From: Chara braunii
Taxonomy: Eukaryota; Plantae; Charophyceae
DNA length: 64,000 nt
Assembly: GCA_003427395.1 (NCBI GenBank)
Contig: BFEA01000011.1
Coordinates: 2,494,002 to 2,558,001, forward strand
Direction: 5' to 3'
The first letter of the stretch is position 1. Every line of letters begins with the position of its first letter. This document shows positions 13,660 to 17,849 of the stretch, one piece after another. Below the pieces are notes generated by a model. That model did not search any database. It worked only from the letters and a program-made list of their open reading frames with translations, and was not told the origin of the DNA. A program made the position numbers and the translations under genes.

Positions 13660-15451
13660 GTTGGCATGCACGGGCAAAGCGGGGAGCGAGCTTGCGTGGC
13701 AAGCAAGAATTCAAAAATGGTCGCGCGCATGGATGCAGAGGAAAATTGGAAAAAATGCTGTCTTTTGAAACTCGTTTCTTTGAAATTCTCGCACGGTCGC
13801 TAATCGGCCTAGCGAAACTAAATTTGAACAAGGGCAGCGGCAACCTCAAAAGATGTATGCAATTGGCCCACAAAATTCAAAAACGGACCCCATTCCCTGT
13901 AATTAGTGAGGAGCTATACTTCGGGGCTTACTTCGGGTTTTACTCTGAAGGGTACGTGAAGCCACGGGGTACAGAGCTTGGCTCATCACAGCCCCCTGAC
14001 CACCTCGAGTAGGGTGGGGGCAAATGTTTGCTGGGGTTCCCTGTATAGGCTTAGGCGTGGTGGTAGGTAGCTAGCGAAAGGTGAAATTGAAAGGGGGAAA
14101 ATAAACATTATTTAGTGTCTAGGACGGGACGCAAGGCTACCCAATCTGGTATCATGTTGCTGGAGGTTAGTGTGATCTGCGCAGCTATATGTGAACTACT
14201 CCCACATCATGTGCTTCCATCACCCCCAGGGACATCGCATGCACTGCCCTTCTCCCACGGAATACTCTAGAAGAAGGTTGACTCTCAAGGTAGCGCGCGC
14301 TGGCAACCCACAATTAGATGACTCTCGAGTAAAATGCTCTTCTTCCTCAACGGAGGGTAGATAAAGGTAGGGATATTTTATTTGATGGCTTTTTTTTTTT
14401 TTTAACATTGGTTTGAGGTGCTGCTGGGGGTGGCATGAGTATCCCCTCGGTAGCAACCCCACCATGGCTCCTATCTATTGGTGGGGAGCTTCACCTGCTG
14501 GAAACTGGGTCCAACATCCCATTACATAATTGATTGCTCCTCATGCAATGACCACTTACCGACTCCCCAGTCACCCGGGCTTCTGAGAAAATGTGACTTA
14601 GGATGTCCTCTTCAACCCTTACCCATGACATTTGATGCTGCCCCAGCCACAAATTATCTCACCAACTGTTATGATGCCCCATTTGATGACCAGTCAATGC
14701 TCAGGAACCAATTAGGTGTTTGCCTGACAAGCCTTGGTTGTGTTTTTTATTCTCGAATTGGACATGCATTCCTTTCAAGCAGTAAATTGTACTACAGATG
14801 TGTGGCTGTGAGATGTGGGGATGAGTGTGGTTGGGTACATCGTGTGTCGCGGAGCGATCCGTGCTGGGGTGGGGTGAAGTAGTCCTTTTGGGGCTTCACT
14901 TTCACCCCAGCCCACTTAGTCTATTGGTCAGGTGTTTGCCTGACAAGTCATTGGTTGTGTGTTCGATTCTCGATTCAACATGCACATGTTCCAGGAAACT
15001 TCCACCCATGCGGTCTCCACCAAGCGCACAGCTGACCAGCTGGCAAAATTGTCAACAGTATTACCCACACGCACATCTGGGCACCTTACTTGTTGGATAG
15101 ATGGCGAGTGTCAGAGGAACCACTGGGATACCAAAATGCAAGGGAACATCTAATGAGAACTCGAAAAAAAAAAAGAAAAAAGTTGAGATGCAAAAGTTCA
15201 ATACATCGGGACGATCAAATGGTCAGTTGCTGACGGGCCAGTCATATACCTGCTAGTGAGCCTCGACAACAACCTGGAGTGATGAGTCGGTGAAGCTCCG
15301 ACGAAACAGTTCGTCACAGCCCTTCGTTTGTTGTCCTTTTCTCCCTCTCTGCCTACTGTTTACCAGGCAGCTATGTTCGACTCTATATATATATGTAGTA
15401 CTGTTTACTGAGCAGCTATGTTTGACTATATATAACAAACGAGAGGTTGTG

Positions 15452-15511
15452 ATGAATTGTTTCGTCGGAGTTTCACCGACTCATCGGGAGGCTGAACCCG
15501 CAACAGTCTGC
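15452..15511 (-). ncRNA. Type III hammerhead ribozyme motif, mutated copy
   Basis: GCAGACUGUU GCGG GUUCAG CCUC CCGAUGA GUCGG UGAAACU CCGAC GAAACAAUUCAU. Core U-to-C change, probably inactive. Confidence 0.75.
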
Positions 15512-16334
15512 AGAAACCCTAACTGATTACACTGCAAGTGATAATCCACCTTAACCCCGACTGTGGTTAAGCATCAACGACTGCCCGACAACTGATACCC
15601 TGAGGTGGACACCAACCACTGCCCTCAAGGTACCTGTGGCAAAAGTCAAAGCAGACTATCACTCACCCACACCAGATGGAAAACTCTACAGACTATCGGT
15701 TCACACCCCATCACAAGCAAGCAAAACACCCACAAAACAAAGAAAGGTCTGTCACAGCCAAAAAATACACTCCAGACACGCCGTTGGCACTAGAGGCACA
15801 GCATGGTCGAGTAGTGACGACCCCGACCACTGCCGCTCGACCTGACCGGAGAATACCGTAGCAGGGTGCTAGCGAAGTCGTGATATATATAGTCAAACAG
15901 AGCTACCCGGTAAACCGTAGGCAGAGAGGGAGAAGAGGACAACAAACGAGGGGTTGTGGCAAACTGTTTCGTCTAGCACCCTGTTACGGTATTCTCCGTT
16001 CAGGCCGAGCGGCAGTGGTCAGGGCCGTCACTACGCGGCCATGTTGTGCCTCTAGTGCCAGCGGCGTGTCTGGAGTGTATTTTTTAGTTGTGACAGACCT
16101 TTCTTTGTTTCGTGGGTGTTTTGCTGGCTTGTGATGGGGTGTGAACCGACAATCTGTAGAGTTTTCCATCTGGTGTGGGTGAGTGCTAGTTTGCTTTGAC
16201 TTCTGCCACAGGTACCTTGAGGGCAATGGTTGGTGCCCACCTCAGGGTATCAGTTGTCGGGCAATCGTTGATGCTTAACCACAACCGGGGTTAAGGTGGA
16301 TTATCACCTACAGTGTAATAAGTTAGGGGATTCT

Positions 16335-16394
16335 GCAGACCGTTGAGGGTTCAGCCTGCTGATGAGTCGGTGAAACTCCGACGAAACAGTTTGC
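16335..16394 (+). ncRNA. Type III hammerhead ribozyme motif
   Basis: GCAGACCGUU^GAGG-GUUCAG-CCUG-CUGAUGA-GUCGG-UGAAACU-CCGAC-GAAACAGUUUGC. The CUGAUGA and GAAA core is intact, with stems I, II and III. One mismatch each in stem I and stem III. Confidence 0.85.
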
Positions 16395-17849
16395 CATAGC
16401 TCCTCGTTTGTTGTCCTCTTCTCCCTCTCTGCCTACGGTTTACCGTGCAGCTCTGTTTGACTTTGACTATATATATATATGTATATATGTATATATATAT
16501 GTATATATATATGTATATATGTATATATATACATGTCATCCATGTGGATGGCCTTGTACGTAAGAGGTGATGAATAGGCGGGGCTTTCCTTCCTTCTTTC
16601 CTTTTTTTGTTTTGTTTTGTTCTGCCTTTGCGCTTTGATTTACAGTGTGACAATATATATATATAGGGGGAAGTTGGGGAACTACGCAAGAGTCACAAAA
16701 ATTAGTTATAATTGCACTATGGGCCAAGATACAGTTTCCAATTAACCGTAATTTCGTGAAAATGGATATCTTTTACTTTTTGAACGAAATTGAAATCGAG
16801 TTTTACCCTCAGGAACAACAAATTTTGACGCTGTGTGTCCGAAATTGGATTTAACGCGGCTTTCGCGTTGAAAAATTCAACGCGCGTTGAATTCGCGTTA
16901 AACTCCCGCTCAAACGCGAGTTGAACGAGAATTAACGAGGTCCGGGATGTTTTTTTCGTGGGCTAAAAATTATCCAAAAAAAAAAACAAAATATATGGGG
17001 TTGTAGGTTTTCTTGAGGACTACAACCCTGTATTTTTATTTTTATTTTTTGATGCTTAAATCTATTTTTTAAAAATCAAAAACATAAACACACAATGAAA
17101 AAACAAAAACGAAAATGAAATGAGTGTTTTTGTTTTGGGTTTCACACAGATTTTTTAAGGGCTAAAACGAAAACAACATCAGGCGTGAGGACTTAGTCAA
17201 TCTGCCCAATCTCTCTCCCGCCCGACCATGACAATTTTGGTTGATGATATTGTGCGTGACTCCTTGCCTTTTGATAGGTGGGAGTGGGTGGTGTCAGGTG
17301 AGTTGAGACTTGCATGGAGTCGAGGTTTGCTAGTCTAAACATGAGCGTGGGTACTGCCCATGCTCGAACCTCACATAGATTCGCCATAGTGACCTTCATC
17401 CTTTCCCGACCGCAGACGAGGACGATCTCTACTGCAATGCGGGTGTGCGGAGTGCGCTATCTCGGCCGGGTTCAAGTTCACTTTTATAACCCATCTAAAG
17501 CGTGTCATATAGGGGGAACATGGTTCATTTTGATTGATCGGTTTTCTTCCCCATCGCTGATTCTGCCTTATACGGATATGACAGTGCTTCCCTGGTCGGT
17601 GGCATGGAGGCCTCAGTTTAACTGCCACTGTTGTCGCCTAGGGGAATTTTGTTCCTGGCGAAGGATGGTGCTGGGCTAAAAAAGGATGGTGCTTCGCTCA
17701 TTTAGTTTTCAGGATTTTCAGGATTTTCAGGGCTGGTCAAAACAGTAATCTCCAAGACTCCAACAAACACCAAACTCGGCACACAGTTGTCTGGGGACTT
17801 TGGGCCCTTCTGCCATTGGAACAATTAAAGAGATTAGCTTCAGAAACCA

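Follow-up and report, generated by a model that had tools for sequence, protein, structure and literature searches.

What kind of element carries a hammerhead ribozyme motif in inverted and truncated copies in the genome of the stonewort Chara braunii, and by what machinery might it have spread? The question is raised by a cluster of repeats at positions 15280–16468 of a 64,000-nt stretch of C. braunii DNA (assembly GCA_003427395.1, contig BFEA01000011.1, positions 2,494,002 to 2,558,001 of the forward strand), termed the window here at its full length. An earlier note, made from the sequence alone, had described the cluster as a non-coding element with a type III hammerhead ribozyme. The analysis presented here indicates that the cluster probably comprises five decayed insertions of one short (about 410–495 nt), non-coding and very abundant C. 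braunii retroelement family.

The repeat unit, as defined by a reading of the sequence from 15000 to 16800, a repeat finder, a blastn search of the unit against the window and a multiple alignment of the copies, is composed of four parts: a body of ~360 nt, a 60-nt hammerhead, a CU-rich tail of ~75 nt and a terminal TA run. The window contains six copies, designated A to F (Table 1), and one further copy, 5′-truncated and flanked by TA repeats on both sides, is present in 153 kb from seven other C. braunii loci (locus L005, assembly GCA_003427395.1). TA repeats are found at the end of all seven copies. Copies C, D, E and F and the L005 copy start at differing internal positions of the unit and share the tail and the TA-repeat end. 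Variable 5′ ends, a shared 3′ end and (TA)n sites constitute a signature of retroposition.

Table 1. Positions in the window of the hammerhead-bearing copies and of their component parts
Feature	Position	Strand	Description
Copy A	15973–16468	+	Near full length
Copy A, body	15973–16334	+	16106–16165 pairs with the hammerhead in the predicted rod; 16204–16288 is an optional 85-nt apical hairpin (folds; read joints and depth trough)
Copy A, type III hammerhead	16335–16394	+	Core intact; private stem lesions at 16341 and 16358
Copy A, CU-rich tail	16395–16467	+	3′ module common to all truncated copies; highest DNA and RNA depth
(TA)n/(TATG)n microsatellite	16468–16535	none	3′ end of copy A; presumed target and priming site
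Copy B	15872 down to 15434	−	Body, hammerhead (15452–15511) and first 18 nt of the tail; 5′ end full
10-nt junction	15873–15882	−	Separates copy D (TA run) from copy B (5′ end)
Copy D	15973 down to 15883	−	Starts at GACGAAAC; tail and (TA)4; 94% complementary to 16380–16462
Copy C	15280–15398	+	5′ truncation inside the CUGAUGA box; 3′ half of the hammerhead, tail and short TA-rich end
Copy E	15399–15434	+	Last ~30 nt of the tail and TATATA only; in tandem behind copy C
Copy F	2749–2663	−	Separate, older, 5′-truncated copy with 77% identity (blastn); inside a TA/CA-rich tract

The copies are arranged in a distinctive order. Copies A and B form an inverted repeat of 356 nt that is 93% complementary, and the 100-nt spacer between its arms is copy D, which lies directly upstream of B as a partial tandem resembling a pseudo-long terminal repeat (pseudo-LTR) and is head to head with A. 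Read on the minus strand, the cluster therefore presents an inverted copy A, a 5′-truncated partial tandem D and a full copy B, an order that, judged from the sequence, matches the standard insertion layout of a Penelope-like element. The Penelope-type inverted and truncated architecture proposed in the earlier note is thus borne out by the variable 5′ ends, the common 3′ end and the inverted copies. Copy B aligns with the unit at 91% over 440 nt (blastn), and is joined tail to tail to copy E, its 3′ end lying against the TA run of that copy; the 10-nt junction at its other end could represent a Penelope-type extension or else the genuine 5′ tip of the unit. Copy C matches 16360–16477 as a direct repeat at 86%, and C and E are probably the marks of earlier abortive insertions into one TA tract. 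The description of the unit as lacking coding capacity also holds: open reading frames (ORFs) inside the copies do not exceed 84 aa, a 112-aa ORF at 16351–16689 exits via the microsatellite, and a protein search with the longest antisense ORF (80 aa) returned no homologue.

Two further observations concern the layout. A read-through transcript of the head-to-head B/A pair (15517–16328) would form a hairpin RNA of 356 bp with 93% pairing, and this RNA, if the locus were transcribed through, could supply small RNAs against the family. In the window at 9094–9159, a TA microsatellite is broken by TGACGA and TTGA (read on the minus strand), which match the final tail bases seen in reads and in the L005 copy; these may be minimal abortive insertions or chance matches.

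The hammerhead itself is readily recognized in both long copies. The sequence, core, GUU triplet and predicted cut after 16344 reported in the earlier note are all present where it had placed them, and its type III assignment is supported by the Rfam model Hammerhead_3 (RF00008), which aligns end to end, over model positions 1–54, with 16337–16392 (+) of copy A (34.6 bits; E 0.0012 over the whole window) and with 15454–15509 (−) of copy B (26 bits). By inspection, the CUGAUGA...GAAA core of copy A is complete, stem II has 5 bp and the GUU triplet is present, with cleavage predicted between 16344 and 16345. The stems of this hammerhead carry two lesions, a C·A mismatch in stem III (16341) and a G·G opposition at the first pair of stem I (16358), because of which the lowest-energy fold of the 60-mer is an alternative hairpin (−23.2 kcal/mol vs −15.1 kcal/mol for the hammerhead). 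The core, complete in copy A and in the family majority sequence, is broken in copy B, where it reads CCGAUGA (15486); copy B is also damaged in stem I (15500), and the 3′ strand of its stem III has decayed. From these sequences it is likely that no copy at this locus is fully active.

Loop I (UUCA) is complementary to loop II (UGAA), as the earlier note had observed in proposing a loop–loop contact. The complementarity stands, and as evidence for the contact it appears weak: four complementary nucleotides between a 6-nt and a 7-nt loop are expected by chance in ~5% of cases by our estimate, and loop II conforms to the general Rfam consensus and recurs unchanged in a metagenomic hammerhead that is unrelated. 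That hammerhead emerged from a scan of metagenomes with the 29-nt core and stem II, which returned two near-identical contigs, each with a type III hammerhead between small ORFs (L001, 8170–8260, minus strand; L002, 3430–3500, plus strand) in a prokaryote- or phage-like context. These were rejected as relatives because they share stem II and loop 2 with the Chara motif but have other stems I and III and lie in another context. The 29-mer is therefore not specific to the family.

The state of the family as a whole was assessed by placing DNA and RNA reads and contigs of the same organism on 14700–16466 at 85% likeness. The majority letters, T at 16341, C at 16358 and T at 15500, account for ~99% of the depth and repair both stem mismatches of copy A and the stem I lesion of copy B; the lesions at these three positions are therefore private to the copies of this locus. 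With the majority letters in place, the 60-mer has the three-way hammerhead junction as its fold of lowest energy (−23.6 kcal/mol). The consensus that the earlier note had drawn from two copies thus carries exactly the repairing letters of the family, and its view that the ancestor was probably intact and that each copy decayed in its own way is upheld by the private lesions and by a family majority sequence with an intact hammerhead, including the core, a GUH site and three properly placed stems.

The family is very abundant. DNA word depth is ~10 in unique flank and 10^5–10^6 in the element, an excess of some 10^4–10^5 fold; these values serve as a rough indicator and not as a copy number. 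Approximately one insertion site is observed per 70 kb across 217 kb of C. braunii DNA, a density that fits some tens of thousands of copies. Read joints that skip 85 nt, together with a depth trough at 16175–16292, indicate that most family members are without 16204–16288. Loose ends of reads are TA-rich, and tail-to-body junctions are present in the reads; the locus itself is without a tandem of two complete ribozymes. A few read joints, not dominant, connect the tail end to 16345–16350. Many DNA contigs and RNA reads leave the match right after 16390 and continue with another tail, terminated by a T-run and (GT)n, and the ribozyme module is therefore common to a second, sister family with another microsatellite end.

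In addition to the hammerhead, the predicted structure of the unit RNA is distinctive. The sense unit of copy A folds as one long rod at −192 kcal/mol, compared with −165 ± 6.6 kcal/mol for dinucleotide shuffles; within the rod the hammerhead is paired with 16106–16165 of the body, and the 5′ end is paired with the tail. The antisense fold of copy A reaches only −131 kcal/mol, and a similar strand difference is calculated for copy B (sense −175 vs antisense −113 kcal/mol). Setting 15 private letters of copy A to the majority brings the sense fold to −210 kcal/mol (z −5.5) and the antisense fold to −135 kcal/mol (z −1.2). The sense fold contains 37 G·U pairs and just 1–2 A·C single mismatches, and the antisense fold contains 3–9 G·U pairs. 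Strand-symmetric decay of a DNA palindrome should yield G·U and A·C oppositions equally, and the rod is therefore a property of the sense RNA. The optional 85-nt segment corresponds exactly to the apical hairpin, and its removal leaves a rod of 409 nt. The modelled folds point to an RNA-level constraint on the sense strand, with a G·U-rich rod formed by the sense RNA only.

The element is transcribed. Reads from two oligo-dT RNA-seq runs span the whole element, the unique flank being without reads. The first mates show a strand bias of 3–7:1 that flips with the orientation of the copy; sense transcripts thus predominate if the libraries follow the usual stranded convention. RNA depth is 5–10 fold higher just 3′ of the cut site than just 5′ of it, the corresponding step in DNA being 1.4 fold, and loose read ends at 16373 suggest that some copies made up of the tail alone are strongly expressed.

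A scheme for mobilization can be proposed from these features. In target-primed reverse transcription, the 3′ (UA)n of the element RNA would anneal to a nicked (TA)n target. It is rather plausible that the enzyme is supplied in trans by an autonomous element of the same genome, the most likely candidate being a Chlamys-type Penelope-like element with a hammerhead. The hammerhead could cut multimeric or read-through transcripts co-transcriptionally, giving unit-length RNAs; these would refold as the rod with the nick inside a helix, a good substrate for ligation, and would yield circles. Such processing, refolding and circularization, proposed by analogy with retrozymes, is a serious possibility rather than an expectation. 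The combined proposal, a C. braunii "non-LTR retrozyme" with a viroid-type (type III) hammerhead, whose cut unit RNAs would form G·U-rich rods and then circles to be copied into (TA)n by a Chlamys-type reverse transcriptase primed on the (UA)n of the element, is tentative and must be considered doubtful.

Several results weigh against this scheme. The scores of both copies lie below the Rfam gathering score of 48.5 bits; at gathering thresholds only U6 is reported in the window, and the two hammerheads surface only when an E-value threshold is applied, such that the Rfam check suggested in the earlier note succeeded with respect to full-length alignment (34.6 and 26 bits) and fell short with respect to score. 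The intact consensus places the motif in the master copies and is not proof of cleavage. No pile-up of RNA ends at 16344/16345 is reported in the oligo-dT RNA-seq reads. The step in RNA depth at the cut site can be explained by a few highly expressed tail-only copies and is for that reason not counted as evidence of cleavage, and the step of only 1.4 fold in DNA depth implies that most genomic copies derive from uncut or re-ligated RNA. Finally, no Penelope-like ORF is found in the window or in the seven other loci (~217 kb), where only LINEs (long interspersed nuclear elements) are present. A Pfam search of 148 window ORFs and of 100 ORFs from three of the other loci (66 kb) gave LINE domains only and no GIY-YIG domain, and the recorded gene calls of the remaining four loci list RVT_1 only. 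The earlier note had suggested a search for linked reverse transcriptase plus GIY-YIG ORFs; the reverse transcriptase ORFs found in the window are those of LINEs, with no GIY-YIG among the ORFs scanned.

These results can be accommodated by other explanations to differing degrees. The sub-threshold Rfam scores, the absence of cleavage ends from the RNA reads and the sequestration of the motif by the rod in the fold of the whole unit would all agree with a hammerhead-like motif that has no catalytic role, the element being an ordinary dispersed repeat that contains the core boxes by chance. This explanation is nonetheless quite improbable, given that the core is entire in the family majority sequence, with the GUH site intact and three stems in their proper places, and that the window-wide E-value is 0.0012; the second family, which shares the ribozyme region and diverges after 16390, points to conservation of a module, and viroid and retrozyme hammerheads are normally sequestered in a rod as well (PMC4918200). 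A better candidate, although still an unlikely one, is a SINE-like (short interspersed nuclear element-like) repeat moved by a LINE, a non-LTR retrotransposon of the apurinic/apyrimidinic (AP) endonuclease type, with the hammerhead as a passenger or processing module. LINE ORFs with RVT_1, zf-RVT and Exo_endo_phos domains are present in the window and are common in C. braunii, and the 3′ end of the window LINE adjoins A7(TA)6. LINE machinery also produces 5′ truncation and 5′ inversion, as in the twin priming of L1. Against a LINE, the unit and the 3′ region of the window LINE share no similarity by blastn; a long A-run that resembles a poly(A) end, and may be one, lies ~800 nt downstream of the ORFs of another Chara LINE (locus L004); and a partial tandem with a head-to-head inverted copy is the described layout of Penelope-like elements, hammerhead-bearing members of which are known in C. 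braunii (PMC8557442).

Either a classical plant-type LTR retrozyme or a fold-back element acting at the DNA level, whether a miniature inverted-repeat transposable element or a palindromic satellite, is scarcely credible. The former would account for the hammerhead type, since type III is that of plant retrozymes (PMC4918200), but direct LTRs are absent, the two hammerheads lie on opposite strands and the direct repeats are 5′-truncated copies of the 3′ module. A tRNA-Met primer binding site is not matched within three mismatches inside the element; matches to this site in the window are not above chance, and the partial match GGTATCAG at ~16248, in the optional apical segment, is attributed to chance. 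A 4-bp target duplication is not discernible because the flanks are microsatellite. The 356-bp inverted repeat with its 100-nt spacer would suit a fold-back element at the DNA level, but its arms are two whole copies of the element and not the terminal repeats of a single one, and the hairpin within the unit needs G·U pairs and so exists at the RNA level only. The 5′-truncated copies favour reverse transcription. The copies at this locus are dead or crippled, and the head-to-head A/B pair is simply a 356-bp inverted repeat in DNA.

The retroelement reading can be placed beside several known systems. Chlamys elements are Penelope-like elements of green algae with an N-terminal GIY-YIG domain (PMC8557442). 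Craig et al. (2021) described canonical 3′ hammerheads in two Chlamys/Penelope-like subclades of C. braunii, as well as 5′ truncation, partial tandems that form pseudo-LTRs and an inverted 5′-truncated copy beside the upstream pseudo-LTR (PMC8557442). Non-autonomous Chlamys elements occur in Chlamydomonas, where non-coding derivatives share 3′ ends with autonomous families (MRC1) (PMC8557442). The Chara family resembles Chlamys-2_cBra and PLE-X of C. braunii in its host and in having a hammerhead in the 3′ region, and resembles Chlamys-type elements generally in 5′ truncation, partial tandem, head-to-head inverted truncated copy and microsatellite targets; the kinship proposed here is drawn from these features. 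The targets themselves differ: Chlamys inserts with a bias for (CA)n and (C)n and Naiad for (TA)n (PMC8557442), and the targets of the Chara family, unlike those of Chlamys, are (TA)n. The account of Craig et al. (2021) contains neither a short non-coding hammerhead family of Chara nor the hammerhead type nor a rod-shaped RNA (PMC8557442). No published description of such a short non-coding family in Chara was found, Craig et al. (2021) being the sole paper among those searched to name both C. braunii and hammerheads, so that the word "undescribed" used in the earlier note can stand for this family, but it must be narrowed in that hammerhead-bearing Chara Chlamys elements are already published (PMC8557442).

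Among retrozymes, the animal non-LTR retrozymes (Cervera and de la Pena 2020, PMC7229834) have type I hammerheads and occur mainly in head-to-tail tandem arrays, and they have been argued to be non-autonomous derivatives of Penelope-like pseudo-LTRs (Li, Clavereau and Pollet 2026 preprint, 10.64898/2026.07.22.740005). Similar to these, the Chara family consists of short non-coding hammerhead repeats with a highly structured unit RNA and no LTRs; it differs in its type III hammerhead, its streptophyte algal host and its mostly dispersed, 5′-truncated copies in (TA)n. Plant LTR retrozymes carry a hammerhead in each of their ~350-bp direct LTRs; they also have a tRNA-Met primer binding site and a polypurine tract, are flanked by 4-bp target duplications and depend on Ty3-gypsy elements for mobilization (Cervera, Urbina and de la Pena 2016, PMC4918200). 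They share with the Chara element a type III hammerhead, the lack of coding capacity, transcription and a stable, highly paired monomer RNA (stability and pairing being taken here from predicted folds), whereas direct LTRs, a tRNA-Met site and a discernible target duplication were not found in the Chara element. Putative retrozyme-like sequences with tandem hammerheads were reported in Chlamydomonas and Selaginella (De la Pena and Cervera 2017, PMC5680766). The Avsunviroidae and other viroid-like hammerhead RNAs likewise have a type III hammerhead within an RNA, a few hundred nucleotides long, that is rod-like or quasi-double-stranded. In contrast to them, the Chara element is genome-encoded, with tens of thousands of DNA copies, and has its hammerhead in one polarity only.

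The interest of the family lies in this combination of features. Angiosperm LTR retrozymes and viroid-like RNAs are the main known sources of type III hammerheads in eukaryotic genomes, the hammerheads of the animal Penelope-linked retrozymes being of type I. A stonewort is a close algal relative of land plants, and the element is abundant and transcribed there; a type III hammerhead, a rod RNA and a Penelope-like insertion mode, if all three hold, would join these two worlds. If the full scheme is true, viroid-like rod RNAs with type III hammerheads would be present already in streptophyte algae, long before the angiosperms, and a single ancestral module would connect the LTR retrozymes of plants, the Penelope-derived retrozymes of animals and viroid-like RNAs. 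The family would then be a testable system for the role of hammerheads in Penelope-like elements and for the origin of viroid-like RNAs from such retroelements. Because all of its copies are damaged, the value of the present locus is that of a clear example of insertion architecture and little more.

Other features of the window were recorded in the course of the analysis. Matches to miRNA (microRNA) families at 15285–15480 are an artefact of the inverted hammerhead-tail copies C and B, and those at 16464–16547 are an artefact of the TA microsatellite; both sets lie far below gathering scores. A decayed LINE occupies 44500–50600 (−), with Exo_endo_phos, RVT_1 and zf-RVT ORFs and a 3′ end at ~43706 at the A7(TA)6 sequence. 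The best homologues of its reverse transcriptase are seven proteins, all from C. braunii, with identity of at most 46%; a record look-up with its 325-aa ORF gave no match. Approximately 100 nt downstream of the LINE 3′ end is a U6 snRNA (small nuclear RNA) copy at 43492–43592 (−; 102 bits), which is followed by a 12-nt A-run in place of the T-run terminator and may be a retro-pseudogene. A second, weaker U6 copy adjoins the element fragment in L005 (2652–2761). Just left of the cluster, at 14818–14994, lies a member of another expressed repeat family, in which ARAGORN found no tRNA; its DNA word depth is 3,000–24,000 compared with ~10 in the flank, and a segment related to it is present at 14700–14760.

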